Below, piece after piece: positions 10,170 through 64,000 of a stretch of DNA of 64,000 nt. Source of the DNA: Paragordius varius (taxonomy: Eukaryota; Animalia; Nematomorpha); assembly GCA_964247055.1 (NCBI GenBank), contig OZ176055.1:434001-498000 (forward strand), in the 5' to 3' direction. The position numbers and the translations under genes were made by a program. Within the stretch, counting starts at the first letter, position 1, and each line of letters opens with the position of its first letter. The notes beneath the pieces are model-generated. The model had not been told where the DNA came from. It saw only the letters and a list, made by a program, of their open reading frames with translations, and made no database searches.

Positions 10170-10312
10170 ATAAAATCAACATTGAGACAGTTCAGAATAA
10201 CTGCGGTGAGACGTGCGTTCAGTGGAGGCAGAATCGTCATTTTTATATTGCGCATAAATGATTAAACTTCATATTCTTGGATCGAGTTTGGAAAACGATA
10301 TGTCCTAGCTTT
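10170..10312 (-). pseudogene. Degenerate extra copy of FN3-gene terminal exon 6
   Basis: Clearly homologous to exon 6, but the acceptor is lost and several indels are present. Confidence 0.75.
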
Positions 10313-11007: not shown

Positions 11008-11575
11008 TTAACATTGAGACAAATCAACATAAATGCGGTGAGACATGTGTTCCGTGGAAGCAGAATCGCCATTTTTATATTGCGCATAAATGATAACTTC
11101 GTATTCTGAACTTGGATCGAGGTTTGGAAAACGATATGTTCTAGATTTAAGCTATAATTTATATGCATATCATGGAATAAATAAAAAATATGCTGGCATA
11201 CCATTGAAAACATAAGAAAGTTATTAGAGATTTTAATAAATCAAACTGCTGCATAATTTACACTAAGTGCTCCAATTTGAGCCTTTTCTCCTTCCACATT
11301 GGGTCGACTTAAAACAATATTTAAATGTTCAATCCCGTAAGCTTTAGCTGTGTGATCGGAAAGAGGGTTATCAATGTAAACAACCAGATCTTTGGTCTTG
11401 CCTCCATTAGTGAGAGTAGAGGTTGCTCGACCAAGTTTTGCAAAAGATTTGGAAATATCTATGGTTTTAAAATGTAAAGGATATATTCAGAATGTTTAGC
11501 CGTAATGATCAAGATAGCTCAATCATAGATTCATACCATTCTGTTCAAGTTTATATTCATCTCCGTTGACATTAA
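11008..11575 (-). pseudogene. Orphan FN3-gene cassette: exons 4-6 only (11537-11575, 11262-11458, 11008-11151), reading frames intact
   Basis: Intact splice sites and ORFs, but no exons 1-3 between it and 13800. Part of the duplication ~10130-11830 / ~13780-15410. Confidence 0.75.
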
Positions 11576-13816: not shown

Positions 13817-13960
13817 TTAACATTGAGACAAATCAACATAAATGCGGTGAGACATATGTTCCGTGGGGGCAGAATCGCCATTTTTATATTGTGCATAAAT
13901 CACAACTTCATATTCAGAATTTGGATCGAGGTTTGGAAAACTATATATTCTGGCTTTTAG
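13817..13960 (-). other. Intact duplicated terminal exon 6 (LKARIYSFPNLDPNSEYEVVIYAQYKNGDSAPTEHMSHRIYVDLSQC*)
   Basis: 144 nt, same length as the intact exon 6, with an intact ttttttttag acceptor and stop. Confidence 0.75.
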
Positions 13961-14652
13961 CTAAAAAAAATGCATATTTTTTATACCGCTAAAACAAGCG
14001 AGTTATCAATTTTAATTAATTAAACTGTTATGCAACTTACACTATTTCCGTTTTTTACCATGATTCGAAATACTATAAAATACGGATCATCAAAATTTTA
14101 AAACATAGTATGCCATTTTTCAAAAAAACCTTTTTTGATGTTGTCAACCATATGATGACATTTTCTTATGGCGAACTCCTCAGCATTTCTGAAATTTTTA
14201 GTTAGACTTCCCTATGAGGAGCCCAAAAATTTAAGTATATTCGCATTACAACTTTCTAAAAGTATTGTTTAGCTTTTTTATTATAGCATATGTGTCTAAA
14301 TGTATTGAAATTATACGGATAAAACGTAAAATAAAGACAAATATTTTTTTCTAAAAAACAGTCACACTTTTTATATTTCGAATTCTCAAAATTATAATTG
14401 TTGACAATTACAAAGATATATATATACATGCATATAAATGTATAGGTAACACATTCAAATATATATTTTATAATGGTAATAAATTATTTTATATAGGAAA
14501 AATTTGGACATAAAAAAGTATGGTTGTCTTTTAGAAAAAAAAATTATCTCTATATTTTTACGTTTTATCCGTATAATTTAAGTTTTTACTGTATTAAACC
14601 ATGTATAAAAAGTACAATTTATTTTTCAATATAGTTTCTACAATTTATAGAT

Positions 14653-22806: not shown

Positions 22807-23087
22807 CCTGCTTAAAAATTTGTTATGGGTCTCAAAATTTAGCTCAGAGTCTTAATATTTGGTAGTTTATAAAAAGTATAAAATTATATTACGCATATTG
22901 ATTGAAATACGCCAATTTCAAGTCTTCTAAAGAGTCCCCCCAAAAATAAAAAACGTTTTTGAATATATATTTGTTTAATTCCTTTGAAATATATTGTATA
23001 AAATGTCAAATTGTTATCCGTTTTGTGCGAAAAAACTGTGATTCGATGTTGGCTAATAACAGCTAAACTTATAAAAATTGGTATTTT

Positions 23088-30227: not shown

Positions 30228-33200
30228 TAAGGTGACCAGATTTTTTGAAGGAAAAAGCGGGACAAATCCGAGAGGGGGGTCATTGGGGGGTACAACCAAA
30301 AATTTTATCAAAAAATTTATTGTGATATTTATTTATTTTTAACACAAATACATTATAAATATAAAAAAATTTGTACCTTACAGGTTGTTTGTATTTTATT
30401 CAATTTTTACATGTGCACGAACAAAGAGTGAAGTCATTGTAATATTTTAGAAAAAAATAATAAAGACAAAATCATCACAAAGTGCGATGGGTGATGCAAG
30501 AAGCGGCAAAAAAAATATTTTTAACAATATAGCGAATATTTGGCAGATACACAACGCTATTCAAACAGCTACTGATTTGCTACCCTGGATGTGGAAAATA
30601 TAGATGTTAAAATACTTGGATATTGTAGAACTGTTGGTTAGCTCTTTTGCCAGCGATTGAAATATTTATAAAAATGTGATCTCCTAGAATCCTATTTTTT
30701 ATCACAGGACAAAGGTCAAAATTCCAAGTCAAAAAAGGTTAGAAAATAATTTTATACCATTACCCAATCGCAATATTATAAAGCATCCAGAAAAACAAGG
30801 CTCAATGAATAGCCAGAATATAAAAATCTTTTATACAAACAGAAACGATTTTTTGGAAGACAAGACGGTGCAGAATGACACTTTTTTATGAAGTCTCCTT
30901 ATTAAAATATATCGAATGAAAACGGATAGAAATGGTTAAAATAATCATTTTTTAAACAAATTATGTTCCATACAATAATATTTTAATTGTAGAATTTGCA
31001 TTATCTTTACCTGAACCACTGCTATTGAACGCATTTTTCCACAGTAAATTAAGTAAGGACACGGAATCAAATTTAAATGTTGAATAAAAGCCATTTTATG
31101 TGAATTTGACAAATTATGAAGACGTATACAATATTTTAAGTAATTTTGTTTATTTTTTAACATAAAAACTTTAAAAATATAAGAAAATATTTTATTCTTT
31201 GGTATATTTTTTTGTTTGAGTGAATGCGTTTTAGCAGATTATCATCATTTTTAAAATATTGTAGAAGTCTTTACAAGAATTTTTCAAATTATATTTGACA
31301 GATAAAACGGTCTTTAAAGTTTCAACATTTAAATTTGTTTCCGATGTCCACACCTGATTTACTGTGGAAAAAACGCGCTCAGTAGCAGCGTTGGTTCCAG
31401 GTAAAGATAGTGCGAATCCACAATTTTTAAAATATTATTGTATGTAATACAGTTGCTTCAAAATGAAATATTTCCAACCATTTCTTTTCTACTGTATATT
31501 TTTCTTTTGTCCCTAATTTAAGTTTTTCATTATTAATATATCTTTTAACTAATGATACTTCAGAAAAAAGATCATTTTCTGAAAGATTACTTTTTGAGAA
31601 TTTTTGGGAGCAAATATAATCAAATGATTTTTGAACATCGCACCAATTAAATTCTGATTTTAATGTTATCTAATGAAAATGATCAATTTCATTGAATTGC
31701 CTCGTCCAGTTCCAAATAAACTTTACAGTTTGTATAAATCATTTTTATATGGTACAGGATATCTTGGCGATTTATTAAGCCTTGTTTTTCTAAATTATTT
31801 ATTATATTGCGGATGGTAATGGTATAAAATTATTTTCTAACCGTTCTTGACATTGGAATTTTAGGTTACTAACTTCATTTGCTTAATTTCGTTTGCCGGA
31901 ATTTTGTCACCTTCTATAAATTTAATAACATTTTGAAAGAGAGAAGCTTGATTATGTTAGAATTCTAACCATATTTTTAAAGAATCACTTTCAAAAAATT
32001 TTTTTTAAGTTGTAGGACATTTGTCCTGTGATAAAAAAAGATTTTAAAGGATCATACATTTTTAAAATTTTTTCGATAGCTGGCATAAAAGCTAACCAAC
32101 GAGTTTTACAATATCCAAGCATTTTTTGATATTGAACTTCTGCATTTTCACAGAATTCTTTAAGCGTTTCAACACTACCGTGTATATATAAAAATAGGAA
32201 TATATTTTAACAACTACATTTTCCACATCTGGTAACAAATCAGCAGCTGTTATAATAGCGTTGTGTATTATATGCGTTGCACCCAACGTCAATAATGTTT
32301 TGATTAAGATTATCTGCTAATTACTGAAAATTATTTTTTGTTCCCCTCCTTGCTTTTCCACCAAAGTTCGTATTGGTGTTGTCAGCGCAATATGCGATAA
32401 TTTTGTCTTTTAAACTATTTTTTTCTAGAATATGCATTATCGAAGTAAATATTATTTCAGAATTTTCATCGGTTAGGGAAATTTTATCTAAAATTTTAAT
32501 TTTTACTCCGGTTTCTGAATCAAAATATCTTATCAAAGTGGGAAATAATTTTGTTTCATGGTGATTTGAAGCATCAGAGTATAGGGAAAAGAAATTAATT
32601 TTTAGCAAATCTTTTTGTATTTCAGAAATAGCATGTGGCGAAAGGATATTGCACACAATGGCTTCAGCCTTTGTACGGGCACATATAAATTTTTTATGGA
32701 ATAACGTGCGAATAACCTGTGAGGTACAGTCCATTGATCTAAAAGAATGGTTGTGATTTACGGCGTGAAAGGATAACACGCCCTCAGCTAGTGCCGAATT
32801 CTTTTCTTCCTCTCCAAAAGCGGTTTTTCGAAAAAAATCGCTCATTTTGTGAGATGATATAACTAAACATTTTTTATGTTTCTGTGTTTCCATATGCTTT
32901 GTAATATCATGTTTGCCGCCATGTGCTAGGGTGAATTCCCCCTCGCATATAGGACATTTAAAAGATGATTCATTCTTCGTTTTTTTGATAAAAGGAAAAT
33001 CTTTCACAAATTCATCGTTGAATTTACAACCTCTTTTTGTGCTCATATTTATAAACTACTATTAGTATAATAAATATTATATTACCTTAATTTTCTGAAA
33101 TAAACGTGTAAGGTACCGATTTGTGGTATCAATTTGTCTTTTAATCTAGAGATTTGTGGTATTAACTTGGCTTGATGATGACAGTAATAGTAGGAAGGAA

Positions 33201-36963: not shown

Positions 36964-38805
36964 TTAAATGCGAGAAAACAGTTTTTTAATTTGTCCCTTG
37001 GTAGCTTTGCAAAATGTTTTAAGCCATCGGCAATAGACTCTCCGGATGTTTGAATCAAAAATTAGGTTAATGTATACACCCAACAATGGGTTAAATTGTT
37101 TGAGGACGTGGACAAGCAATTGAATATTATAGAGATGCCATTTATAGTTATAACTCCAGGCATAACCCGTCACTAAAACAAACACAATGTAAGGCAGATT
37201 AAAGACAAACAACTGAGAACTTTGAACTCCAATTAGAATGTTGGTTTTGATAGCGGCTTTACGAGAAACTTGATTGAAGCGTTTACATATCAATTTTTTA
37301 AATTTGTAAGCCGAAATGACTGATATGGGAAAATGTGGGGCTTGTTTGATGGGTTTACCCACCAGATTTTTAGCATGCTTCTCATCTGATATTGTAATAT
37401 GTTTAGAACTAGGCCGATTTGGTATATTAACTACGGTTTTCTTTGCATCAAAACTATTATCTTTTGCCCGATTAGTTTGGGGTGCATTAGAATTATTTGC
37501 ATTATTTACTGCCTTCCGTGAAAGCTTAGCCTTAAAACTCAAGTACCTGGGTCCAATCTTTATGCGATTCATGTAGATTTTTTTAAAGATGACAGCATTA
37601 CAAGTTAAAGCAATGACTAACGGAATTAAATACATTAAACTAACGTACGCTTTGTCAAAACTACGCGTCCACGATTCATTAATTTGATCCAAGTAATAAA
37701 AATTATAGTTGAATTCCCCATGAATTATGGACATGTGTTGCTGCATTTCTGCATAACTCACATTTCCTTGTACTGCTAATCCAGGCATGTTTAGCTTCAA
37801 ATGTGTAAGCGGAGATTCAATAATAAATTTTTTATAATTTCGATCCTCTTTGTCCAATGTAAAACAGGGAAACGTTGTATGTATATGATTCTCTTTAATG
37901 TAATCAGAACTATCAAAAGTAACGGAATGAATTGGGGCATCAGAATGATAGCCTCCTTTAAAAGCGATTGGGTGTGGAATCCTGTTACCAGTTTTAACTG
38001 TAAGCATTAAAGCGTAAGGTACAGAGAATAGAGCTGAAACAATACTAAACACCAGGCAAATCAGGATAATTTTACGCTTGGTAAAATTTCGACCATATGA
38101 GAGCGGTTTATACAAGGCATAAATACGATCAAACCCAATGAAAGCTGTCATCCAATTTGCGCTTGTGGCAAAAAACTCTTCAAGAAACCAATGGTATCGC
38201 GTAACAAATTTGTAATACATCCCGTCCGATCGCGAGATAACAGACAATCCACTGTTGATTTTGTTCAGGTCTCGTTCGTTTGTATAAGGTTTCATATGTC
38301 CATTGAAATCATTGACATAGACCCAATTCGAATTCATTTGCTTGATAGGTGTTAAGGGGTTAAAATGACTATCCTTAATAACGTGATGTGTCGTGTGATC
38401 AAAATCACATGACCTCGCAATAAAAATGTAAGCGATGGGCCAAATCAAAAAATTAAGTGTAGCCGAGATGTCACACACCAACAAATAGTATATGTAAACG
38501 TAGAAATGAGGTTTTCGTTTCACTCTCAGGGTACAAGCGTAGAACAGTACGTTACCTAGTATACCGGCAACAGTTAGTGAACTTAGTAAATACTTCTCAA
38601 CAATTAGTTCGGCTACAGAGAAATGTCGCGCTGCCAAAGTCCCACCCACATTCGACATAAGGAACAAAAGTGTGAGGCAAAACTTTAACAAAGTTGAAAT
38701 GCCAAATGAATTACCATTTGGTACATAGTTTGATTGGTGAATGAATAATGATATGGATGATAGTGGTGCTTGTTTGAAGTGTACCATCATATTCAATATT
38801 GGCAT
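36964..38805 (-). CDS. Class A (rhodopsin-like) peptide-type GPCR, single exon, 613 aa
   Basis: Seven TM segments with GN in TM1, D in TM2 (LLVCD), DRI in TM3, P in TM4/5/6 (NLPY) and FNPLLGVY in TM7. Confidence 0.9.
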   Translation of the reverse strand: MPILNMMVHFKQAPLSSISLFIHQSNYVPNGNSFGISTLLKFCLTLLFLMSNVGGTLAARHFSVAELIVEKYLLSSLTVAGILGNVLFYACTLRVKRKPHFYVYIYYLLVCDISATLNFLIWPIAYIFIARSCDFDHTTHHVIKDSHFNPLTPIKQMNSNWVYVNDFNGHMKPYTNERDLNKINSGLSVISRSDGMYYKFVTRYHWFLEEFFATSANWMTAFIGFDRIYALYKPLSYGRNFTKRKIILICLVFSIVSALFSVPYALMLTVKTGNRIPHPIAFKGGYHSDAPIHSVTFDSSDYIKENHIHTTFPCFTLDKEDRNYKKFIIESPLTHLKLNMPGLAVQGNVSYAEMQQHMSIIHGEFNYNFYYLDQINESWTRSFDKAYVSLMYLIPLVIALTCNAVIFKKIYMNRIKIGPRYLSFKAKLSRKAVNNANNSNAPQTNRAKDNSFDAKKTVVNIPNRPSSKHITISDEKHAKNLVGKPIKQAPHFPISVISAYKFKKLICKRFNQVSRKAAIKTNILIGVQSSQLFVFNLPYIVFVLVTGYAWSYNYKWHLYNIQLLVHVLKQFNPLLGVYINLIFDSNIRRVYCRWLKTFCKATKGQIKKLFSRI

Positions 38806-40681: not shown

Positions 40682-42120
40682 TCATAACAGTAGGGGTGAG
40701 GTAAATTGTTGTTCATCGGGCGTTTGATTTATACGCTAAAATAAGTTGATATATAAAGAAGGATTAGGTTAATTATATGATAAAATAATTTTAAGTGTTA
40801 CTTTTCAAACGTTTACGTAACTAAAGTTATTAGCACATTTATGCAAGATTTGAAAGTCATTTAAATTATTAAAATATGTAATCCATGATAAAAAGCTACA
40901 CCAAAAACTTAATTTAACCACCATAGTTTAAAAAACACTTTTAAATACTTTAATGCATTCAAAACAACTTAAATAGTTTAGACTTTTTATTGAAAAAATT
41001 CTTCGTTTAAAACACTAAAAAAAGTGCTATCAGGGTAATACCTGAGAAACTTCAAAGAGCCAAATATGTCCAAAATCATCACCAACTGCCAGATGAGTTC
41101 CGGTCGAAGACCATTTAACACTATTGAGCGCATGTTTAGATATTGATTCGGAAAATAAGGGTTCCTACAACCATATAAATATTTTAACTTATATACGCGT
41201 TTAATTTATTTAAAATGCTATAACTATATATTATACGATTTTTTTTTAAAATTATACTCAAAAACATACATTGTGTATATAATAAAAAAATAATAGCCTT
41301 TAACGAGAAAATAATATTTTTCTTAAAATATAATCATGGGATGTGAACCAATAAAATATATAATTTAATACAAACAAAAATTAATTGCTATGATATAAAT
41401 TTATTTCTAAATTTAAGGTATGCTAAAAAACATTGCAAGTTTTCATATATCCATCCTAAAAAGCATATTATTGGCTTAGAGTTGGTTAGTGTTTGTTTGA
41501 AAATTACATTATTTTCTTTACATCATTCATTTTTAGCCAATATTATTTCTCTTGATTGTAATACCTATCCACAATTTCTGAAAAACAGTGGCAATACATA
41601 TTTATAGTTTTAACTTAAAGCAGGAATGTTCAACACAAATGGTTTTGCGGGCCGCATTCAAATCAATATGACCACACACATATATATAGATATATATTTT
41701 ATAAAATTTTATGTATAAAACCGTAAATTACTTATGTATTTCACATTTTAGCTAGTTCATCCTGGCCAAATAAGAAGACTAGCTCAGTAAATTTGTTTAA
41801 CAAATATCATTAATTTTACTTAGAATATGCACTTTTTAATCATAAAATATATTATATTTGGCATTTCGTTAAAAATGTTGTGTGTTTTCCTACTTCCAGT
41901 GAATGCATTAAACTGTAAAGTTGAAGTGTTCCCGACCCTGTACCCAAAGCGAATAAGGCCGGATTCGTGGGGGACCATTGGACACAATAAACATATTCTT
42001 CGAATGAATCTATACTCCATATTGCGTTTCTCATCACGTTACTGCTTTCTTTATTCGTGTGAACTGGATAAGATTCTGTAGATAAATTATGATGAAATTT
42101 GCATACAAATTTCGTTTTTT

Positions 42121-42162
<42 letters not shown>

Positions 42163-45100
42163 TATAATGAACAAAAATGTTTAAAACGTATGATGTAATA
42201 AAAAAACATTTCTTTTATGCCATTTGCCAGTTAAAGCACCATTTTTTCAACGAAATACAACATTTCATAATTGTATTTACTTGGAAAACCTTGCGTTTGC
42301 TGAAAAAAATATTGCGTTTGCTTAAATTTGTTACTTTAGATAAAAAAATTTCGCTAACAAATTTTATATCTTAACATAAAAAATACTATTTAGAGTGGTT
42401 TCAAGGTGAGCGTTTGTAGTCGTAAATTTTGAATTGATTATATCACCACCATTGTAATTACTAATGGATGCGTTTTCATCAACGACGTTATTTGTTTGAG
42501 AAGTTAAATTAGTCGTAAGATTAGTTTGTTGTTCTTCAATCAATGTTGAAAAAACTGGGAATCGCATTAAATAAGGGGCTACGTCTTGCTTATTCTAAAG
42601 ATAGGTAGGTAGGTAGACAAGCAAAATTATTGTTTTAAGCCAAATACTCCATGAGGCCCCTTCAAGAGTGACCTTAAACACTTAAAATTGGTTCTTGAAC
42701 TGTTCAAGTTCAGATTTAACCATAAATTATGTATGTATGTATGTATTTTAATAATTCATTATATATTTATTTATTTAAAATTATTATTTTCATTTATAAA
42801 CCAATTTCTTGTTGTTTCAAACTAATTTTATCCAATTCAACAATTTTATTTGATTATGAATGTTTTCAACGAAAAAATGTAATTAATATCTAAAAAACTT
42901 GTATTTTCATCTATTATAAGTTAAAACCTTATTGAAATCAATAAATTTTTTAAAAACTCAAGAATACGGTTTCTGAATGATCAAAATTTGGTTAAATCAA
43001 GAGAATAGGTTAAAAATAATAACATTAATGATACACAAAAAGGTAAAAACAATAAAAAAATCAACATGTTGTGTTCAAGAAAAAACTTGAAGTGTTCAAG
43101 AACAGTCTTGAAGTGCAAACGGTATATATATATATATATAAACATAGTAAAAAATTAAATTTCACATATAAAACGGAAAAATATTTTAAATGGGGTTATT
43201 TTTTAGATATTATATATGCAATTATAATTCAGCTAAAATTATATAAATTTATTATAATATTTCGATTACTACAAGTAATCTTTGTCAAACGTAAAAAAAA
43301 ATATAAACTAAAATTTAATATAAACCAAAAATTTATTATTATACTTTAAGAGACCAAAGTTTAACACTCCAATCCGTGGAACATGTAATGAAAAAGTGAT
43401 TATATTCAGTCAGGGGTGAAGGATTAAAACAGATATCAAGGACGGGTCCGGAATGGCCTTCAAACACTTCATTTATTCCACTTTTTCTAAGGTACATTAT
43501 AAAGATGGGAGTTATATTTATTAATTTCGAATATATACGGATATAATTTTATATAAATAATTAATAGATTTCCATATTAAACAACACTTTGCCTCAAATA
43601 TATTCGAAAAAAAACGGGTAAAAAAAGCAAAATATAAAGGTAAAATTTAGTCAAAAACCAAATTTTTAGACATTGTTTATATGTTTATTTTAAATATTTT
43701 CCCTTTGAGAATAACATACAAAGCTCTCGTCCCATTCTTAATACCATCATTACATTGAAAAAATACATATTATATCTTAAATTAAAAAACCCAATATGCA
43801 AAAACAGGAGTGTACCATGCAAATGGCTTCGCAGGGCGAATTAATTTAAAAAAACCGGGCACGCCGCTTTCGAATTATATATAGATATATATATAGAGGA
43901 ATTTTTATTTAAACATAAAAAAAGTATGTTAAATGCAAACACATACAATTTAACAATTTTGTCTAATTTACCGAAATTATAAAAAATATAAATTTTAAAA
44001 AAATTTGTTTAAAAATATAAATTTTACAGGATTTTGTCACTAATTTTTCGCTTTCCGCATGTCAGACACCCCTGAGACTAAAAAAACTAGCATTTATTAA
44101 TTTGAAGATAAGTTATGAAAAAAATATAAAAAATTCGATTTTTAAAACAACTATCTAACAAATAAAAAGCAAATATTAGGAAGTAACTTACGTTCCCAAT
44201 CTGCGTGCACTAAAACACGGACCCTGTTCAGTTCCTACAACTAAATAATTATCATCAATCAGGGATGAGGAAGCATTTAAGTCTTTGGACGACTTTTGTA
44301 AGGAATAATTGCTATTTTTGTTCGTTGAGTTTAAGACAAATGGATTATTTAAATCTAATATATAGATAGAATATATCTTACAGTATGCCTATAAATGGTT
44401 GCTTATTTAACACTATATAATTGGGCAATATTCCTATCAACACACACAGTAGAGTGTATATGGAAAAACAACAATAATGAAATGTTGTTGAATATACAAT
44501 TTTTTCTTACTTTCTTTCTTTTTTTCTTTTTTTCCATACACTACTGTGTTAAGGATTGCAAATTTTCCTACTAGATAGATATATATATATATATATATAT
44601 ATAGTTGCATACTGTAATGTATTTCTATTTATATATTAACATTATTCTCATAAGTAAGTTGTTTTGAATTTCAATAGTGCCTGCAAATTAAATGGCTTGT
44701 GGTACTTATCAATAACTTTTCCAAATTTGATACAAAATTATTTGAATACAAACAACAATTTGTGGGTTTTTTTGGGAAATTACGATTATAATAGGCTAAA
44801 AACAAAAGGGAAAAAATATTTTTTTTAATTGCCTTAAATACATTAAAAGGAAAGGCTTTAATTTAATTTTTTTTAAAAAGAGAATTTTATAAAATAGGAA
44901 TAACTAAAATTAAGTTTTTATAATATTTTTATATATTTATAAATCTTGATAATATTGAAATTACAAAAAAAGTTTTTAACAATTTTATTTTTGGATTAAA
45001 ACAAAGAAACTAAATTATTAAACAAAAAAAACCATTAATATTATTTATTGTGGATGATGATGATTGGTTAATGTTTGGGGAAGGGAAACTTAAGCACGTG

Positions 45101-48100
45101 ACCGATGAGATTCCTAGGCTTGCACCCGTGAGCACGTGATGTGGATCGGTGTCACGTGCTCTGGCCATCGAAGCGCTGGCATTTGATTGGTTTAGCAAAC
45201 TGGTTGATTGAGCAGAAACCGGTAAGACTAAGGATGGGGAAGGTCCTATATGTATATAGATATACGATTTAGAGTTCAAATCCACCCCTGAACAATTCAA
45301 ATTCCCTCGAACAATTGAAACTCACCTTTAAACAATTCAAATTCACCCTAAAAATAAATTATGTATTTTCGAACTAATATAACTCATTATTAATATGAAA
45401 TATTTTAGGTTATAGTTTATTCTTTTTTCAGTATTATTTTAATTTAAAACAAAATTTTTATTTTTTAAAAATATATAAAAATATTGGTAATTTTTGAAAC
45501 TAAAAACATATATTTTATTTAAGGGTGAATTTGAATTGTTCAAGGGTGAATTTGAATTGTCAAGGGTGAATTTGAATTGTTTAAGGGTGAAATTGAATTG
45601 TAAATGGTATATTATATTGAGAGAATGTATTAATAATGTACTTATTCATTTAAACAAGCTATTTGGAATTACAGTAAAAATTGAAATTATACGGCAAAAT
45701 GTATTTGAAAAAATAAAGACAAATGTTTTTTCCTAAAAGACAATCCCATATTTTTTAAATCTATATTTTTTTGACATTATTGATTGTTATAAACTCTCAA
45801 AGTATAAAATGGAATGTAAATTGGTTACACAATCAATCATGTATTTAACGATTGTATTTAAATGATTATTTAGGATATATTGAGGTTTGTATGATTGTCT
45901 TTTGGAAAAAAATTTGTTTTTATATTTTAAAGTTTTATCCGTATAATTTTAATTTTTACTGTAATTATATAAGATACGTAAATTTTAATTTTCAAACTTT
46001 TGTAAAGTGAAAAATTTTTTTGTAATTAAAAAACGAAAGGGAAATGTTATTATTAAACATAGGTTTTTTAAAACAAAATTTTTATCTATATTCTGAGTTT
46101 TTTTCAAAAACAAAATATGGATTTTTAAAGTCTAAATTTAAAAAATATAATGATGAATTTAAGCTCTTTTTTATGTTAAATTAACACTTTAAATTAATTT
46201 TAGGTTTAAAAATATTCTCGTTAGTATAATGGTAAAATGATGAAACTGTCTCAAAAATATTATGATATCTCTTAAAATAAAAATTTTAAATAAGGTTAAT
46301 ATAATACAAAACCATAAGTTTAAAAATTAAATAAAAATTTATTTATGATATTTAATTCGACTATTTAATTTACAGTATGCATTTTAATGGTTGCTTATTT
46401 CACCACACTATAGTAGGGGGCAATTGCAACACTACAGTAGTGTATGGAAAAAAACAACAAAAAGTTTAAATAACCAATTATTTCCTTTCTTTTTCCATAC
46501 ACTACTGTGTTGTGTTGCAAATTGATGTACTATAGTGTTAACGCTTTAAATAAACCAAATTTTTCAAAGTAAAACAAAAAAAAATGAAAAATAAAAATAT
46601 AATTTCAAAGCAATTAGAATATTTTTATTCATTAATTTTATACTCAAACTAAATTTTTAATATAATAAAAAAATTTAAACTTATAACTTTTTTTAAAAAA
46701 AATCGAAAAAATATAATGTATTAACCCACCAAGGAAATCAAATAGAGTTAGACTATGTTTAATAATTAATTCTTCACTCAAACTCAGTTCTAAATGACTA
46801 AAAAAGCCTATTTTTTTTAAAAAATGGACTTCCAAATTTTTTTCAAAAAATCAAATTGTAATACATTTACACCCAAGTATATTAATTAGAGTTAGACTAA
46901 TTTTATCAATTCTAAACTTAAAACTCAATTATTAACAATTAATATTTTATTCTATATAACTAAAAAAGTAAACTTACAATTTTTTAAAAAAAATCGAAAT
47001 TGTTAAAACAAAAAAATGTAATATAATAACCCACCAAGTAAATCAAGTACGGTCAAAGGAGTAGCAAAAGAGCCATCTAGAGACCATTCAAGCAATTTTC
47101 CATCAGTTGAGAGGGAAAGGAGACTGTTTGAGCTTTGACTGCTTCCAATCATTTGTAATCCACATATAGGGTGCTAATCATAAAATTATTTACAGTAAAA
47201 ATTTCTAAAATTATAAAGACAAAACGTAATTAAAGGAATACATCCTTACTAACTATATATTTCGATAAATTAAAAATTTTAAGCTATAAAAACGCGAAAA
47301 CCAAAAGAATACATTCTTACTAACTATATATATATCTTAATATTTTTAAAATAAATTTTAAATTAAAATTTTTAATTATACGGACGAAAATCAAAAGAAT
47401 ACATTCTTATTAACAATATCTCTTGATATTTTCTAAATAAATTTTAGTAAAAATTATATATTATAAGGACAAATGTATAATAAAGTAATTTACCATACTA
47501 ATTATATATCTTGATATTTTCTAAATATAAATTTACAGTAAAAATTTCTAAAATCATAAGGAAAAAATGTAAAATTTAAGGGATACATCCATACTAACTA
47601 TACATCTCGATGTTTTCTAAATAAAATCCTATTTAAAATTTATAAATTATGCGAACAAAACGTAAAAATTAAAGGAATATATCCATACTTACTATATATC
47701 TCGTTATTTCAAAATTACAGTTAAAATTGTAAATTATAAAAACAAAAAACGTAAAAATTGAAGAAAAACATCCATACTAACTATATATCTCGATATTTTC
47801 TAGAAAATTATTATTTACAGTAAAAATTTCTAAAATCATAAAGAAAAATGTAAAAATTAAAGTAATTTACAACCATACTAACTATATATCTTGATATTTT
47901 TAAGATAAATTTTGAATTAAAAATTTTTAATTATACGGACAAAACGTAAAAATTAAAGGAATACATCCTAACTATATATCTCGACAAAATAAATTTTACA
48001 GTAATTCTATATTATACGGAAAAAACGTAAAAATTAAAGGAATATATCCATACTAACTATATATCTTGATATTTTTTTAAAAAATTCCCATTAAAAATTT

Positions 48101-51100
48101 ATAAATTATACGAAAAAGTAAAAACCAAAGGAAGAAACAACCATACTATTTATTTATTGATATTTTCTAGATAAAATTTACAGTAATAGAAATTTATAAA
48201 TTATATATAATCCTTACTAACTATATCTTGATATTTACCAGATAAAATTCATAGTATTATAAATTTATTATACGGACAAAACGTAAAAATTAAAGAAATA
48301 AACAACCATACTAACTATATATCTCGATATTTTTTAGATAAATTTTAAATTAAAAATTTTAAATTATAAAATCGTAAAAATTAAAGAAAAACATCCATAC
48401 TTACTATATATCTTGTTTAAAGATAAAATTTATAGTATTATAAAATTCTAAATTATAAGGAAAAAATGTAAAAATCAAAGGGATATATTTATGCTTACTA
48501 TATTTCTTTTTATTTTCTTAATAAATTCCCATAAAAAATTTTAAATTATACGAAGAAAACGTAAAAATTAAAGGAATAAACAACCATACTAACTATATAT
48601 CTTGATGTTTTCTAGAAAAATTCTGAATTATAAGGAAAAAATGTTAATTTCGAAAATTTTACGGACAAAACGTAAAAATTAAAGGGAGACAATCATACTA
48701 ACTATATATCTTGATATTTTCTAGATGAAATTTACAGTATTATAAATTGATAAATTATACGGACAATATGTAAAAAACTAAAAGGACAAAATTTTGTAAA
48801 AACTGTTAAATTCTATTAAAAATCAGAAAATGCAATAGATTTAAATGGCATAAAATTTGTTGTCTAGTGTTATAAAGTATGATCTTAACACATTTATTAT
48901 AAAATTTAATCCTTAATCATACAGGTAAAATGGGTAAAATCAAAGATTACACATATAGTTTTTCTTTATAAACCACAAAAATTATTTATATTTTTTTACT
49001 TTTTTGTTTTACCCTCATTTTTTTTTCTTAGATATATAATTAAGTAGACCAATTTAAATTTTATTTCTTATTCACACACACAACACTAATAAGTCTGAAG
49101 GAAAATCATTTAAGGATACCGACAATATTTGGTTTTTTCTGGCTTATATAACCACAAAAAATATTATTTTCTATTTTTACTTTTTATGTTTAACCTTATT
49201 TTTATCTTAGATATATAATTGAAATAATCAATTTTTTTATTCACAACCCTAATAAGTAATACATAAAATCATTCAAGGATACTCACAATATATGGTTTCT
49301 TTTCCTTATATAACCACAAAAAATACTGTTTCTATTGCAACTTTTAGGCCTATATAACCCCTAAAAATACTGTTTCTAATTCTATTTTAGACTTATAAAA
49401 CCACAAACATACTGTTTCTATTTCAACTTTTTAGGCATATATAACCCCAAAAAATCTTTAAAATTCACTCTTTTAATATATCAAAATCTAAATTTCAAAT
49501 TAATCTATAAATTAAAAAGTTGTTATACAGTGTGGGCTTTATGAGTAAGGGGTGTCCTTTGAACCGGGGTACTTTTGTTAGATCGATTATCCCAAACAAC
49601 TAATTGACCGGAATAACAGCCACCTATGATTAGGTTGGGGTGCCATTTCGTCGCAAATATTACGTGGGAAATTATGCTCTATAAGATAATATGTGACAAA
49701 ATAAATTGCAATTTATACATACGGACAAAATATAAAGACAAAAATCTTTTTACAAGGATAAACCTTACTTATACCTTTTTTTAAAGCTTAATATATCTTA
49801 AATATGCATTTTAATAGTTGCTTATTTCATAGTATAGAGAAGGGAGGTAATTTGCAACACAGTACTAGAGTGTATGGAAAAAAATGAAAGGAAATAATTT
49901 TTTATTCGCCATTTTGTTGTTTTTTTCCATACACTACTGTAGCGTTGCATATTGTGTAAAATAAGCCACCATTAAAATGCATATTGTAAATTATTTAATT
50001 AATTGGAAAATACCAATTTATATTTCTATTTCATACTTTTAGGTTTGAAATAATGCGTTATATTTAAAAAAAATAGATATAAAAAGTATATGGTTGTCTC
50101 TTTCGATAAAAAAAATTGTCTTTATATATTAATAGGTCCTTATCATTTCAAATTTTATTTCAAAAAACGGTAATTTTTTAAGATTGAATCTATAAAACAC
50201 ATTTAATTCAAACTCATTCCGGGAAAATTAGGGTAAAATACTCAAAAATTTATTTTTTATAAATAAAATGCACAAAAAAAATTTATATTCACATTTTTAT
50301 ATATCAAAATGAAATATAATTTTTTACCATTAACGGTAGGAATAATAAAGATGTGAGAAAATCTGCAAATATAACTAAATTTCAAAAAAGATATCACAAA
50401 TTTATGCCAGAAAATATAAAACATTTTCTTTGAATATATTTCAAAAAATTTTTGAAAAAACTCACAAAAACTTCTAAAATAAAAAAATTATCTAAAAAAC
50501 TTTTTTTTAATGCCATTGAAAAATGGGGCGATTTATAGTAAATAAGTAAATACTTGATAAGTCAAAATGTATTCCGGTTCAAGATTTCCAAATCGTGTAT
50601 TCCACACGCAAACTAAACCGGCGGAAGTATCAAGATCAGCTGATTTTAAAGGACCAGCACCAGCTGTAGAAATAAAACTATTTTCAGTCGTTAAATTTTG
50701 ATTATTTAATAAATTTTGATTATTTTGATTTTGATTATTTAATGTTGATTTTGCCATTAATGTTCCATTTCGCAGTAATGGTAAAGAAGATGGGAGGCCT
50801 TTATAGTAAGAGGCTACTAAAAGTTCAGGGAACTAAGGAAAAAATAGAAAAAAAATAGAAAAAATTTTTTTTAAAAAAAGTGTTAAAAAATTATGTTTTC
50901 TGTAAATGTAGTATATTAGATTAAAATATCATAATTCTTGATTGAATAAAAATTATTGCATAAAATAATTTTTAGAAAACAACTTCAATTACTGGTTTTA
51001 AAGTGTTTTAATTGAAATTATACGGACAAAACGTGAATATTAAGGCAAATATTTTTTTCTAAAAGACTACCATACTTTTTGAATCTTGATTTTTTTGAAT

Positions 51101-51728
51101 ATAACTCATTGTTTTAAAATTTAAACTACAAAGTTTAAAATAGATATGGTAATTGGTAGCACAATCAATTATATATTTATATATATACATAAAATATAAA
51201 TTAAATAGTTTATTTAGGATAAATTATGGTTTAAAAAAGTATGTGGTTGTCTTTTGGAAAATAAAATTTGTCTTTATATTTTTACATTTTGTTCGTTGTT
51301 TAATTTCAATTTTTACTGTAATCATGTTTTTTTGCTTGTGAATTGAAAAATGGTAAATCATTTAAATTGATTAAAATGATTAGGTATAAATTTAAATTTG
51401 TATAAAAATATTTTATAAAATAACTACTTAGAAAACAATAATATCTCTTTTTTATGGGTTTTTTTGAATTCACTTTTGATTTTATAATGTTAGAACTACA
51501 TAAGGGTTTTATGAAATAAAAAATTGTTTTTAAATTAATAAACATTTTTATGTTTAATTCCTTTTTTTGAAATGAAAAATTAAAATTTTTATTAAAATTT
51601 TAAGATAAAAAATTAGATGGCGATTTACTTGAGTACTCCAATCCATGCTTGTTATACTTCTATTGGCACATAACGTTTCATCCATAATAGTATGTTTTAG
51701 AGTTAAATAATCATCACTATCTTTATAC

Positions 51729-51790
<62 letters not shown>

Positions 51791-54700
51791 CCATTTACAG
51801 TTCAAATTCACCTTTAAAAATTTAAATTCACCCTTGAAAAATTCAAATTCACCCTTGAACAACAATTCAAATTCACCCTTAAACAATCAGTTACAATACA
51901 TCTTTAAAAATTTAAATACACCCTTAAACAATTCAAATTCATTTGAACAATTTCAGTTTACCCTTAAACATTTCAAATTAATCTTTGAAAAATTTAAAAT
52001 CACCCTTTTGAACGATTCAAATTAACCCTTGAACAATTCAAATAAATCCTTTAACAATTCAAATCACCTTTGAACGACAATTCAAATTCACTCTTGAACA
52101 ATATTCTATTTCACCCTTGAACAATTCATATTCACCCTTGAACAATTCAAATTCACTCTTAAACAATCAGTTCAAATTAACTCTTGAACAATTCGAATTC
52201 ACCCTTAAACAATTCAAATTCATCCTTAAACAATTCATATTCACCTTTTAACAATTCAAATTCACTCTTGAACAATCAGTTCAAAATCACTCTTGAACAA
52301 TTCAAATTGAATTCACCCTTGAACGAAAATGTAAATTGCTTGAACAATTCAAATGCACACTAAAAATAAATTATGTGTTTTCGAAATAATGTTGCAATTC
52401 ATGGCGCATAGTTTATTGTTTTTTCAGTATTATTTTAACTTAAAACAAAATTTTATTTTTGAAAAATATATAAAAATATACGATGTATTTTTTATCTTAA
52501 AAAACACATAATTTATTTAAGGGAAAATTTATATATCGTTCAAGGATGAATTTGAATTGTTCAAGGTTTAATTTGAATTGAAGGTGAATTCGAATTGTTT
52601 AAGGATGAATTTGAATTATATATGGTACAGATATCTGTAGGAATTTACAGCATGCATATCAATGGTTGCTTATTTCACACTATAGCTGGGCAATTTGCAA
52701 CACAACAGTAGTGTATCGAAAAAAGAAAGGAAAAAATTGTTTTTCTTAACATTTTGTTATTTTTTTCTATACACTACTGTAGTGTTGCAAATTACCCTAC
52801 TATAGTGTGCATGAAATAAGCAATCATTAAAACATGCATACTGTAATACCTAACTTAAAAAAATAATATATTATTATAGATGCTTAATAATGAATGTATA
52901 ATGTATAAAACGAAATAATTTGGGAATATAAAATCAAAAAACATTAACTCTCCCCTCGCTTATGATATAATAAATGTTAATTAAATAATTTAATATTATC
53001 CTTGATTCTTTTTTCTATTCAAAGAATTTTTTTACATAGATATAGAAATTGTTTGCAATAAGCCAACCCGCATATAATTAAATAAAAATAAAATTTAAAT
53101 TACAAAACTGATATTTATTATTCAATAATGCATTTAATGATTGATTTTCAGAGGGACTATGAACTGTTTAAGGGTATATTTAAAAATTTAAAAGGTCAAT
53201 CAATTTTTTCATATAAAATAGTTATAATTATACTAACCCGCTTCTAATTAGTTAAAAATTTAAATTACAAAACATAAATTTTATTATTTAATAATAATGT
53301 ATAATATAATATAGATTTTCAGGGTGAATATGAAATGTTTAAAAGTATATATATTTAAGGTTTTTCAAAGGTTAATCAATTTTTTTACATAAATATAGAA
53401 AAAGTTCAAAATAAGCCAACCCGCTTATAAATAGTTAAAAATTTCAATTACAAAACAGATATATTCAATAAATTGATTTTTCAGGTGAATATAAAATGTT
53501 TAAGGGTATATATTTAAGCTTTTTTCAAAGGTTAATCAATAAATTATAGGTATATATAAAATTTAAATTATTTTACCTAGATGAGTTTAATGAAGTATCC
53601 CTGGCATAATCAACTGTTATATCATAGGGTTCGCACAGAATACGTTTAACAATTTTAATGCCATGTTCAACGAAGGCTAAGAAATTTGCATCATTCAAAA
53701 CGCGAGTTTTTTCAACACTATCCATTTCTTCAACTATATATATATATATATAATTTAATAACCCTAGAACAATTCAAATTTACCCTCGAACAATTTAAAT
53801 TCACCCTCGAACAATTTAAATTCACCATTGAAAGACAATTCAAATTCACCCTTAAACAATTCAAATTCACCTTCGAACAATTTAAATTAATAACCCTAGA
53901 ACAATTAAGATTTACCCTCGAACAATTCAAATTCATCCTTAAAGAATTTATATTCCTCCTTGATCAATTCAAATTCACTCTTGAACAATTCAAATTACCC
54001 CTTGAACAATTCAAATTACCCCTTGAACAATTCAAATTCACATTCGAACAATTTAAATTAATAACCCTAAATTCAAATTCACCCTTAAACAATTCAAATT
54101 AACCCTTGAACAATTCAAATTCACTCTTAAAAAATTCAAATTCACCCTAAAACAATCTAAATTCAACCTTGAACAATTCAAATTCACCATTGAAGGATAA
54201 TTTAAATTAACCCTTAAACAATTCAAATTCTCCCTTAAACAATTAAAATTCCCCCTTGAACGACAATTTAAATTCAACCTTAAACAATTTTAATTCACCC
54301 TTGAACAAATCAAATTCACCCTTAAACAATCTAAATTAACCCTTGAACAATTCAAATTCACCTTTCAACAAAAATTAAATTCACCCTTGAACGATTCAAA
54401 TTCCCCCTGAACGACAATTCAAATTCACCCTTGAACAATTCAAATTCACCCTTAAACAATTCCAATTCACCCTTAACAATTTGAATTCACCCTTAAACGA
54501 CAATTCAAATTCACCCTTAAACAATTCAAATTCATCATTAAACAATTCAAATTAATTCACCCTAAAATAAATTATGTGCTTTTAAGATTAAAAATTACCT
54601 TTATTTTATAATAAAAAAAAATGAAATTTTGTTTAAAATTAAAATAGTACTCAAAAAATATTAAACTAAGCCATAACGATATATTTCAAATTCATGATGA

Positions 54701-56642
54701 TGAATAATATTAGACCGACACCTAATTTATTTTTAGGGTGAATTTGCTTGTAAATGGTATATTATCATAAAAAAATGGTTAAAAAATCGGTTTAATTTAT
54801 ATATCATGAGAGATCTTTTAAACAGCGGTCAACTCAAATAAATGATTCGGCAATTCAAGAACAACTTTTCTAATATAAATATTAAAGAAAAATTAAATTA
54901 ACTTAAAAACGCCAAGGTTATTTGTCTATATCTAAAATAAAAACATCTTTTCGTATTAAACTTGTGTGAGAAAATTCAAATTTTAAAAAGTTCAAAACTA
55001 TGTAAACTACTTCAACGTACAATGTTGCAAAGGAAATGTGTATAACAGCTGATTAGTGTCATGATCAGCAGGGGAGTGTTTTGGGATGATGGCGGGAGAT
55101 TCCGAAGAACGAGGAATTATGCGCCCACTCGCTCCATTGTGAAGCATATGATTATGAGTATGCGTAGGATCTGAGGCTGAGGCTAGGAAATCAAAAGCAT
55201 TGAGCCCGGGTAAGCATTCATCGAAATCGGGTTCCTCGTGATTCGCATATGTTAGCACTAAAGGCAAGATGGTGCATTTATAACTCATAAAATTCTTTAA
55301 TAAAAAAAAAACTTTGGAAAAAGAATTAACACCAATAAACTAATAATTAATTTGAAAAAGACAACCATACTTTGTAAAACATAATTCATTGTTTTGGCAT
55401 TGCAAAAAAGGGGATATAGAGATGTCAATTTGTATCACTCATATAATTATATATTTTAAAATAAATTTATAAAGAAATTATCAAAATTTTATACAAAGAT
55501 TGGTCTTTAAAAAATATTTGTCTCTTAATTTTCACATTTTGTCCGTATATTTAAATTTTAATTCAACAAAAATATAAAAAGACATAATAAAAAATTAAAA
55601 ATACGTTATTAATAAAATTATAATATGATATAATGGAAAAAACGGCAATCAAAACAATCTTTTACTTGATATATTTAAATCATATATATACCTCAATATG
55701 TTTTGCAAATTTTTTTTCATTTAGGATTGGAAAAAAAACAATCAAGAAAATTTTACCATAATAATCTTGCACGGGTTTGGTGGATTCTTCGTCTAATTTT
55801 ATATTGGGGAAAAAGAAATTCATATATAAATATATTTTAAACAACATGTAAGTTAAAGCTAAACTGTTTAATAATTCCCATATATTTTAAAAAGTTGTAA
55901 AAGATAATTAAACTAAAAGCAATTGGATATGTTAGTTTTATTATTTAAAGTTTTAATTTGGGCTAAATATATTGAAATTTATAAAAAATTCTATTCGTTA
56001 ATAATTGTTGTTCTATATAAAAAATTTACGGTATTTTAAATATAAAATTTAAAAAAAATATTTTGGTAATCGCTAAGAGCCATGTTAGAGGTCAAACAGA
56101 TTAAAAACTATATTGAAATTTTGATTTTTTTAAAAAAAACTATATGAAAGTGAATACAATTTATATTTAAAACCTATTATACCTTTTTCAGCCTCAATGT
56201 CAATTTGAACTTCCTTGTTATACACAACCTTTTCCACAGGGAGTATGTTTGTTTGAGAAATGTTTGATAAGGTTAATCGATTTAGAATGACAGATCTAAA
56301 AACATATTATTAATAATAAACCGATTCTCAACTCTTTGGTCAATATTATCTTTTTCTGACAAATGCTCATCACCCTTGTCTAACAACCCATTTTCAATTT
56401 GATAATATTCTAGAATTTAAACAAATATTTGTTACTTGGTGCAGTTATACCCAATTCTTTTAACAGTTCATCGGGTTCAACATCGTTTGAATGCATAATG
56501 ATAACCTAAGTAATTATTTTTACATTTATCCTACATTTTCTTGGAAGCGTTTTTCATCTTCTCTCCTCTTTTTTTCCTCACGTATCTTAGCTAATTTAGC
56601 TTTTTTGATTTCAAGCTCTTCTTTGCGACTCGCCGATGACAT
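40682..56642 (-). CDS. DYNC1I: Cytoplasmic dynein 1 intermediate chain, 17 exons (56535-56642, 56436-56505, 56322-56409, 56183-56295, 55021-55257, 53577-53733, 51629-51728, 50554-50832, 49529-49678, 47035-47173, 45033-45245, 44192-44354, 43345-43486, 42387-42594, 41894-42075, 41042-41164, 40682-40735), ~841 aa
   Basis: N-terminal coil [23 protein letters not shown]; light-chain region [20 protein letters not shown]; WD40 motifs [91 protein letters not shown]. All phases are compatible (2526 nt). The last exon is the least certain. Confidence 0.93.
42644..43124. mobile_element. Foldback family 2 copy (degenerate) in a dynein intron
   Basis: Inverted TTCAAG/CTTGAA units and a right end TGAAGTGCAAACGGTA followed by (TA)n. 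Confidence 0.55.
44381..44614. mobile_element. ~200-bp palindromic MITE, family 2 (TA|CAGTATGC...GCATACTG|TA)
   Basis: Inverted repeat core GCAACACTACAGTAGTGTATGGAAAAA. Other copies at 46373-46540, 49800-49988 and 52648-52843. Confidence 0.7.
45263..45609. mobile_element. Foldback family 1 copy
   Basis: Inverted 21-bp arrays, shared spacer and AAATGGTA end. Confidence 0.75.
45672..45961. mobile_element. 290-bp Tc1/mariner-type MITE, complete copy
   Basis: TA|CAGTAAAAATTG...TTTTTACTG|TA, with TA on both sides. Confidence 0.85.
47190..48790. repeat. Tandem array of ~100-bp units derived from the end of the 290-bp MITE
   Basis: About 15 head-to-tail units of TACAGTAAAAATTT..TATACGGACAAAACGTAAAAATTAAAGGAATACATCCATACTAACTATATATCTCGATATTTT. 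Confidence 0.85.
51733..51784. repeat. (TA)26 microsatellite
   Basis: Read directly from the sequence; it abuts the dynein exon 7 acceptor. Confidence 0.95.
51789..52627. mobile_element. Foldback family 1 copy with expanded left arm
   Basis: TACCATTT terminus, a long 21-bp array (~51790-52350), the shared spacer and a short inverted right arm. Confidence 0.8.
53060..53540. repeat. Three tandem ~170-bp units
   Basis: Repeated AACCCGC..TAAATTACAAAAC..GATTTTCAGGGTGAATATGAAATGTTTAAGGG..AAAGGTTAATCAAT. Confidence 0.7.
53752..54759. mobile_element. Foldback family 1 copy with ~800-bp 21-bp array
   Basis: AACAATTCAAATTCACCCTT array at 53755-54560, spacer in reverse orientation, AAATGGTA end. Confidence 0.8.
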
Positions 56643-56859: not shown

Positions 56860-58720
56860 AATTACATTATATGTATTATCGAGCGGTCATATCCGTAACT
56901 ATTTCCTTATAGAACCCTCTCTATGGCGTCTTCGCTTTTTAAGCTTAGTTTTGCCATGTCTCTCTTAACTGTATCTATCCATCGCGTTTTAGGGCGTCTC
57001 ATTCCCCTTCACAATTAATCATCAATCTTTTTACCTAACCATCTTAAACGATTTACCATCATCTTTTGCGTTACCGGTTTGATTTCGGTACTTCCTCTTA
57101 TGTAGACATTCCTCACCTTGTCATTCCTCGTTACACCGCACATCAATCTAAGCAATCTCATTTCAGTAACCTCAAAGTGCCTCTCTTCTGATTTCTTTAT
57201 TGCCCCTGTCTGTGAGTTGTACATCATTGTTGGTTATATAACAGCACTGTAAGTCTTACCCTTTACTTTTAGGTCAATATTTTTATCGGACAAAACATTT
57301 GAGATTTTTTTATAATTTGCGCAACTATTTAGAATTTTTATTTATATCATGCGTTAAAAAACCACTGCTGCTAAAACCTAAATATATCCTCCTGACCTTT
57401 TAATACCCACCCTTCTTCGAATTCCATTTCTCGTTTTCCCACCGAAATTTATAAGTTCTGTTTTCTTATTAACTTTTATACCGCATCGTCGTAACTTATC
57501 AATCCATTTACCCACCCATATTAATTTATGCAAATCATCTGACAGCACTATTAGGTCGTCTGCATTAAAAAATACCAGCCACCACATGAATATAAATAGT
57601 AATGGACTGATTGCTGACCCTTGATAGACGCCTTGGTTTATTTCAATAAATTCTGACACTCCCTGATGTGTTTTAATTTTGTATGATGTGAATCGTACAT
57701 GCTATTAGAATCTTTATGTAACTTTCAGGAACGTTTTATCGTCTTAAACTCCACCAAATTATACTCCGTGGTATTCTGTCAAACGCCTTTTCAATATCGA
57801 TTAAAATACCATGCATCTCCTTTTTCATTTCTATATGCTTCTCGATTAGCCTTCTTACTGCGTGAATCGGATCAATGGTGGACTTTTCTGGAATAAAACC
57901 AAATTAATTACCCTCTTTAGTAACCATTTTTCTCATTCGTTTCTCTAGAACTTTCTCAAATAACTTCATTGAATGCGACATCAATCTTATCCCTCTATAA
58001 TTATTACAGTCATTATTATCTCCTTTACCCTTGAAAATGGGAACAGTGAAACTCTCTTTACATTCTGGTGGTATCCTACCTGTAGTAACTATATTATTAA
58101 AAAATATCCGTCAAAAATAATACCTTTTACTGACATTATTTCCAACAGTTTATGTTAAAATCGTCTGGACCTACAACCTTATTTAAAGACATCTCTTTTA
58201 AACCAGCCTGGACTTCTTCTTTTGTTATACTTTCAATAAGCGCAGATATATAATCTGGTGTTTCGGGTAAATTTGTTTGACTGGCGCCCAATTTAAGGTC
58301 CTGGAAATATTCTTTTCATCTCTTCAATATTTTCGCTTCCTCAACGAGCAATTTGCCGTTTTTATCTTTTATAGCAATCGTGTTAGGGGGCAAATCCAGC
58401 TTTTTTGTGTCTTTGTCGAGCAATTTTAAAAAGTTTATTTAGACCTGCTTACCGTTTAACTCCTCATATGATGCTGTCTTTCCTTTTTTGACCAATCTCA
58501 CAAGCCTTTTAAGTTTCTTATTAATCTTTTAATATTTTTCCTTGTCTTCTGCATGGTGGGTATATCTCAACATTTTAAAAGCTTTACTTTTTTCTCGTGA
58601 CTCTAGAATTATTTTTAGTCATTCAGCCATGCCGCTCTATAAACCTAATTTCTGCCACCTTTCATTTCACACACACCTTAACTCCCGCCTCTCTTTGGAA
58701 ATTAAACATCATTGCAAATA
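56860..58720 (-). mobile_element. Decayed RTE-clade LINE fragment immediately upstream of the dynein IC gene
   Basis: GVYQGSAISPLLF, FNADD, CGVTRNDKVRNVYIRGS, RLRWLG and GRPKTRWIDTVK motifs, with many frameshifts. Confidence 0.85.
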
Positions 58721-63334: not shown

Positions 63335-64000
63335 ATGAGAAAATTTGGTTTCTTCCTTATATTCCTAAGTTGTTTGGCATTATGCCTTAATGGAGATGCA
63401 GGACCTGATCCAGAAGCCAATGCGGAGGCCCACGCTGAAGCACAACCTGACCCTTCCCCAAGGCCCGAAGCTGGCCCTCAACGTATTTATATAAATTTTA
63501 TGCTTTTTATAAATTTTATGCTTTTTATAAATTTTATCCTTTTTTATAAATTTTTTTATAAAATTTAAAATACCATATTGCCTTAAACATTTAGTAGTCT
63601 AAAACATTTTCTTAAGTTTTTAAAGCTAAACATTGATAGATAAATTTATAACATTTATAATACAAGTAAAATTGAAATTATTTACAGACACAAAGTACAA
63701 ACAAAAGACAAATATTTTTTTTGAAAAGACAATCAATCATCAATTTCAAACCTTAATTTTTCCTTAATCAATCTAATGACATTGTTTAGTACAAAAGTGA
63801 TTATGATGTTACCAATACATTTTAATACATACAATTTCAAAAAAATATAATGCAGTGAAAACTGCATTATATAGGGGCCGTCTCTCAGGCTATATAGCGA
63901 ATATTTTTATATATATGAATAGATTCGTATGAACAGATTGAACCATCCGATTTAAGCCAAGTGTCGTGTTTAGAAAGTTGTACGAGTGAAGATCCCCAAC
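63335..64000 (+). CDS. Secreted prepropeptide with X-Ala/X-Pro dipeptide pro-region (exon 1 63335-63482; probable exon 2 from 63923, runs off the window)
   Basis: Signal peptide MRKFGFFLIFLSCLALCLNG, then DA-GP-DP-EA-NA-EA-HA-EA-QP-DP-SP-RP-EA-GP-Q. Donor C|gtattt at 63483. A phase-compatible acceptor at 63922 gives HSYEQIEPSDLSQVSCLESCTSEDPQ... Confidence 0.8.

Follow-up and report, generated by a model that had tools for sequence, protein, structure and literature searches.

The main text of a survey that covered 51 animal genomes (September 2026) describes introns shorter than 30 nt only in myxobolids and Dicyema, links them to parasitism, body reduction and an economical genome, and makes no mention of Nematomorpha (PMC13644364). 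For the myxobolids (Henneguya, Thelohanellus and Myxobolus), that text gives median intron lengths of 22–27 nt and reports that the canonical branch-binding region of the U2 snRNA and U2AF1/2 are retained (PMC13644364). Dicyemids have a median intron length of 27 nt, with approximately two thirds of their introns shorter than 30 nt (PMC6543705). In parasitic flatworms, intron lengths peak at 37, 90 and 3000 nt in Opisthorchis felineus (PMC6530080) and show modes at approximately 32 and 58 nt in Gyrodactylus salaris (PMC4040987), and intron definition has been proposed for the 5′ micro-intron clusters of flukes (PMC6530080). The nematomorph genomes that have been sequenced are 200–300 Mb in size and rich in transposons (bioRxiv 2024.06.11.598342). 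We found no statement on intron length or trans-splicing in nematomorphs in the literature searched, a body of work that leaves most subscription journals outside it.

Here we describe a gene for the cytoplasmic dynein intermediate chain (IC) in a 64-kb stretch of DNA from the nematomorph Paragordius varius (64,000 nt; hereafter the window). At its 5′ end, three adjacent GT–AG segments on the minus strand are predicted to be introns: 29 nt at 56506..56534 (phase 0, 21% GC), 26 nt at 56410..56435 (phase 1, 19% GC) and 26 nt at 56296..56321 (phase 2, 12% GC). A preliminary description of the same DNA had already pointed to these segments, and the coordinates, sequences, lengths (29, 26 and 26 nt), 3n+2 character and GT..AG ends that it gave are all exact; its central proposal, that one animal dynein IC gene combines tiny and kilobase-scale introns, very probably concerns real spliceosomal introns. 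It had not remarked that introns 1–3, of 16 in all, are precisely the tiny ones, nor that none is 30–305 nt long. We put the probability at roughly 0.85 that they are genuine U2-type GT–AG introns of ancestral origin and that the dynein IC gene whose 5′ end they occupy is intact, the three having shrunk to 26–29 nt in one nematomorph lineage while the downstream introns stayed at 0.3–2.4 kb.

The locus resembles those of myxobolids in having GT–AG introns of less than 30 nt at conserved ancestral positions, in their adjacent clustering, in a donor reduced to GTa and in belonging to a parasitic animal; the donor of about GTa and the mostly TAG acceptors also recall the signals described for myxobolids and Dicyema in the main text of the 51-genome survey. 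Most myxobolid introns are tiny, however, and the genomes are small (74.9 Mb in H. salminicola), whereas 13 of the 16 introns here measure 0.3–2.4 kb and the window is rich in transposons. Dicyemid introns fall in the same length class and likewise occur in a conserved exon–intron structure, but theirs reflect a genome-wide miniaturization in animals with a highly reduced body plan, whereas the tiny introns here are in the minority and grouped at the gene's 5′ end. The closest architecture is that of parasitic flatworms, in which adjacent micro-introns with a weak polypyrimidine tract lie at the 5′ end (ordinal positions 1–2) and kilobase introns occur in the same genes. Their short mode is nevertheless 32–37 nt, compared with 26–29 nt here, and flatworm micro-introns have been reported to lie closer to the splice-site consensus than the long introns of the same animals, which is not seen in the dynein gene. 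Because the superphylum differs, the likeness to flatworm micro-introns would be convergent. Dicyemids had been named as a precedent in the preliminary description; the myxobolids and the flatworm architecture were missed. The predicted dynein pattern is that of a flatworm architecture at dicyemid or myxobolid length, in what would be, relative to the main text of the survey, a third lineage.

The IC gene runs on the minus strand from 56642 to 40682 and comprises 17 exons that encode 841 amino acids with zero internal stops. The model was built by script with fetched homologues, on the basis of tblastn searches with mammal, tick and nematode IC and protein searches with single exons. The match to tick IC has an E value of 3e-68, and the predicted protein has the domain order N-terminal coil, light-chain-binding segment (PF11540) and C-terminal WD40 propeller. 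Exon 1 (56535..56642; 108 coding nt, with the ATG at 56642) encodes the dynein IC N-terminal coiled coil; exon 2 (56436..56505; 70 nt) a second helix, the tick counterpart of which reads DPDELLSSFGIT; exon 3 (56322..56409; 88 nt, compared with 91 nt for exon 5 of mouse Dync1i2) a poorly conserved linker; and exon 4 (56183..56295; 113 nt, compared with 116 nt in mouse and 107 nt in tick) the Tctex1/LC8-binding segment. Exon 4 matches the Pfam family Dynein_IC2 over the cut-off (E = 3.4e-7, 30.4 bits) and weakly matches the Drosophila IC peptide (PDB 3fm7; E = 0.083). The coil, second helix and Tctex1/LC8 segment that the preliminary description had recognized in the flanking exons are thus recovered by tblastn with homologues and by the Pfam match.

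Intron 4 (55258..56182; 925 nt, phase 1) is the first long intron of the gene, and both tick and mouse have a phase-1 intron at the same place. The rest of the gene (40682..55257, minus strand) encodes the WD40 propeller in exons 5–17, separated by 12 introns of 306–2355 nt. Exons 5–9 lie at 55021–55257, 53577–53733, 51629–51728, 50554–50832 and 49529–49678; exons 10–13 at 47035–47173, 45033–45245, 44192–44354 and 43345–43486; and exons 14–17 at 42387–42594, 41894–42075, 41042–41164 and 40682–40735, with the certainty of the model lowest at exons 5, 11, 14 and 17. Introns 4–16 measure, in order, 925, 1287, 1848, 796, 875, 2355, 1789, 678, 705, 750, 311, 729 and 306 nt. This gene agrees with DYNC1I1/2 (PF11540 and WD40) in the order of its domains and in almost every intron position, but the 841-amino-acid protein would, in the model, carry insertions specific to the lineage, both within WD40 repeats and between them. 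The modelled protein is approximately 200 amino acids longer than usual, with predicted insertions rich in Asn and Ser in exon 8 and with what appear to be additional exons inside the WD40 region at 45033–45245 and 42387–42594. A search of protein representatives with exon 8 returned just two matches, both to unrelated repeat proteins. The 64-kb window contains no second dynein IC copy.

Retention of any of the three micro-introns is incompatible with the full-length protein. All three are 3n+2, and every one of the seven possible retention combinations truncates the protein. As the preliminary description had stated, retaining introns 1 or 2 introduces stops in frame, which lie inside the introns themselves (more than one in intron 1, one in intron 2); retaining intron 3 shifts the frame and leads to a stop just downstream of the intron. 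Their composition also sets the segments apart: GC content is 12–21% in the micro-introns, 17–26% in the long introns of the same gene and 30–46% in its exons, and the inner GC of the micro-introns is below that of 97.6–99.5% of exon windows of matching size. The three shortest introns of the gene are introns 1–3 of 16 (P = 1/560 under random order, for one gene), and the length distribution has a gap, with none of 30–305 nt and 13 of the 16 introns at least 306 nt long.

The sites that these introns occupy are shared with distant relatives. The phase series 0, 1, 2, 1 of introns 1–4 is common to the window, tick and mouse. At the corresponding sites, the tick gene has introns of 322 nt (phase 0), 325 nt (phase 1) and 3306 nt (phase 2), followed by a phase-1 donor, and the mouse has kilobase introns at the sites that match the three micro-introns, the counterpart of the 29-nt intron being mouse intron 2. 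Relative to anchor motifs, introns 1–4 lie at codon offsets of 28/32/27, 6/7/9, −7/−4/−6 and 11/12/13, respectively (window/tick/mammal); the alignment is poor around introns 2 and 3, so that their positions match within 1–4 codons and not exactly. Among the long introns, eight occupy precisely the alignment column, and have the phase, of a mouse Dync1i2 intron, and for seven the same is true of an Ixodes persulcatus intron; the dynein gene therefore keeps ancestral intron sites. Exon and intron sizes of mouse Dync1i2 are those of PMC2908135 (Table S1), mapped on the assumption that exon 2 has 108 coding nt and that exon 3b is 3 nt longer in the mammal protein used, an assumption supported by the eight exact intron matches. 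The first exons of the tick gene were rebuilt so as to reproduce the I. scapularis RefSeq N terminus (140 of 140 residues). The I. persulcatus annotation mis-splices this region, reading through a donor and omitting exon 3; the I. scapularis protein gives a consistent structure. In the dynein genes of a sponge and of Pristionchus, the three micro-intron sites are absent, and the intron sites of these genes are mostly different and uninformative. Given that the phases 0/1/2 and the positions match those of tick and mouse, the predicted tiny introns are old bilaterian introns that shrank, rather than new insertions.

The segments are best classed as putative introns of the U2 type. Excision of the GT..AG segments restores the conserved reading frame, and their positions and phases are common to the introns of orthologues, approximately so in the gappy region. 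A U12 type is ruled out, as the donors GTAGGA, GTAACA and GTTTAT differ from RTATCCTT and the CCTTAAC branch motif is absent. Over the 16 introns, donors are reduced to about GTa (A at +3 in 13 of 16, G at +5 in 5 of 16), acceptors are slightly richer than a bare AG (T at −3 in 14 of 16, giving TAG), and the last exon base is G in six, A in six, T in three and C in one. These weak signals look alike in the tiny and the long introns: pyrimidines occupy 6–7 of the 10 nt preceding the AG in the micro-introns and 4–10 in the long introns. A-rich stretches are present in the micro-introns, as expected for DNA of 12–21% GC. Two other candidate GT–AG segments, of 29 nt close to the final exon and of 25 nt in the 5′ untranslated region, were unsupported and were dropped.

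Most likely, such introns would be removed by an essentially standard major spliceosome with relaxed demands on length and signal, by analogy with myxobolids. The tiny introns would be recognized across the intron (intron definition, for which flukes provide the precedent) through the GT, a nearby A acting as branch point, the TAG and an AT content that contrasts with that of the exons, and the long introns would be recognized across their short flanking exons. Cap-proximal introns may have been trimmed by deletions down to a lowered minimum length, with transposon and repeat insertions tolerated in the downstream introns. An Rfam search of the 64-kb window returned no match, and hence no snRNA or spliceosome component there.

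Frame restoration alone is weak evidence for these introns, because shuffled linkers often allow GT–AG solutions. We counted frame-restoring GT–AG solutions in dinucleotide shuffles of the linkers: with introns restricted to 15–30 nt, a solution was present in 7.5% of shuffles for linker 1, 7.9% for linker 2 and approximately 0.6% jointly, and with any intron length these frequencies rose to 19% (linker 1) and 60% (linker 2). We also enumerated the stop-free splice paths from the ATG to the exon-4 donor with up to four introns; each path was scored with a profile built from 14 homologous animal N termini, the window's own gene excluded. The path with three micro-introns ranked first of 1278 at 63.7 bits. 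The earlier claim that the N terminus reads through only if all three segments are removed is too strong, because 1278 stop-free paths exist; it stands for the 29-nt intron, which occurs in every one of the 58 paths in which coil, second helix and light-chain motif are preserved, and weakens for the two 26-nt introns, which are best-scoring and not strictly forced. The N terminus could in principle be spliced with longer introns, either throughout (for example, introns of 160 and 65 nt that skip most of exons 2–3) or with the 29-nt intron real and introns 2–3 replaced. We regard this as very unlikely. It draws on 207 stop-free paths that contain only introns of at least 30 nt, on further stop-free paths that combine the 29-nt intron with introns of 43–127 nt, and on the poor conservation of exon 3. 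However, the best of the all-long paths reaches 44.6 bits, a cost of approximately 19 bits, and loses the second helix, so that the conservation of this element with ticks is left unexplained; the mixed paths score 6–10 bits lower than the micro-intron path, would place exon-like, stop-free DNA of 32% GC inside introns and for the most part break the 0/1/2 phase series common to tick and mouse. The case for the predicted micro-introns is thus carried by composition, profile score and conserved phase and position. We consider it hardly credible that the segments arose as errors of assembly or as insertions into a gene copy undergoing decay. Sequencing errors are usually indels of 1–3 nt, whereas the segments would be three non-repetitive, AT-rich GT..AG inserts, each of them at a position and in a phase that are ancestral, and the gene, which has no second copy in the window, is otherwise undamaged throughout its 841 codons.

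If the introns are real, they might instead depend on a modified spliceosome (altered U1, PRP8, SF3B/SF1 or U2AF) or on a dedicated cap-proximal pathway that couples splicing to cap binding or transcription start. The sharp split between three introns of less than 30 nt at the 5′ end and none of 30–305 nt would fit such a mechanism, as would the equal frequency of A and G (six each) among the exon bases that immediately precede the 16 donors, and the short introns of 44 and 48 nt in Gordionus montsenyensis, which suggest that the length limit became lower within the phylum. This nonetheless appears unlikely, because introns of 22–27 nt are handled in myxobolids with a conserved U2 and U2AF, 5′ clustering is already present in flatworms and the tiny and long introns of the dynein gene have similar splice signals. 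For the same reasons, the unusual spliceosome proposed in the preliminary description is not borne out: myxobolids with such introns keep the canonical U2 branch-binding region and U2AF1/2, and flatworms pair 5′ micro-introns with kilobase introns. A more specific version, which we offer tentatively and think rather unlikely, is that splicing became position-dependent in one horsehair-worm lineage. Cap-proximal introns would be held at 21–30 nt by modified or cap-coupled spliceosome assembly, downstream introns would be spliced by ordinary exon definition and grow to kilobases, and, with no compaction of the genome, the minimum length within the phylum would have fallen from approximately 40–48 nt to approximately 25 nt. 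Were this so, the two worms would provide a close species pair for finding what sets the minimum intron length of the spliceosome.

On the preferred reading of ancestral U2-type introns that shrank, the window's lineage would represent the third independent animal lineage with introns of less than 30 nt and the first ecdysozoan found, as measured against the main text of the 51-genome survey. The long, repeat-laden introns in the same gene argue against simple genome compaction as the cause. Gene finders with an intron minimum of 30–40 nt would miss or truncate such 5′ ends, which could inflate the apparent gene loss in this genome.

Comparison within the phylum was possible with G. montsenyensis (GCA_954871325.2), the GC content of which (26.93%) is close to that of the window (27.0%). 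Introns 1 and 2 of its MRPL41 gene, 44 and 48 nt in length, were the shortest seen there (n = 2, unique solution). If Gordionus truly has a short class of 40–48 nt, the question of minimal intron length could be tested through spliceosome genes within one phylum. The Gordionus dynein IC gene was not retrieved with a stramenopile query, alone or aligned with one exon from the window, and is absent from the fetched flanks of both Gordionus genes for a G-protein-coupled receptor (GPCR) related to one in the window. The latter gene, at 36964–38805 (minus strand), encodes an intronless rhodopsin-family GPCR, with the true start probably at Met53 (38649). Its relatives among 5.8 billion proteins are just two, both from Gordionus sp. 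m RMFG-2023 (G. montsenyensis) and 36–39% identical; at the DNA level, the identity to Gordionus is 70–76% over two stretches. With protein identity this low, the window and G. montsenyensis would represent different species or genera; no phylogenetic marker gene lies in the window. Both Gordionus orthologues have three long introns each, of about 0.3–1.4 kb, which were either lost in the window's lineage or gained in Gordionus. Hidden in-frame micro-introns in the window's GPCR were rejected, because the gene carries nothing inserted where the conserved Gordionus intron lies.

The remainder of the window contains repeats, mobile elements and putative secreted products. A degenerate tandem repeat of approximately 20 nt occurs at 53760–54560, 51790–52360, 45260–45340 and 45490–45610, and also near 3070–3140; it makes up much of the length of the long dynein introns, and several copies end near acceptors with (TA)n runs. 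An exon at 561–749 (minus strand) contains a hydrophobic signal-like stretch, an acidic spacer and an RKKR cleavage site, as well as the beginning of a peptide that contains Cys, and possibly belongs to a secreted peptide precursor; it has no Pfam match. At the opposite end, 63335–63481 (plus strand) and onwards past the window edge, a signal peptide is followed by X-Ala/X-Pro dipeptides in the pattern of a secreted-peptide propeptide, also with no Pfam match. Three to four similar multi-exon units lie in tandem at 3800–16620 (minus strand); they contain exons that resemble fibronectin type III (a weak match to Pfam fn3) and short introns of approximately 85–90 nt by eye, none of them less than 30 nt. 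A decayed non-LTR retrotransposon with Pfam matches to endonuclease and reverse transcriptase is present at 20179–22822 (minus strand), and a second reverse-transcriptase fragment at 57000–58700 (minus strand), just upstream of the dynein gene. A hAT-like transposase at 31200–33055 (minus strand) has a weak match in a Gordionus locus.
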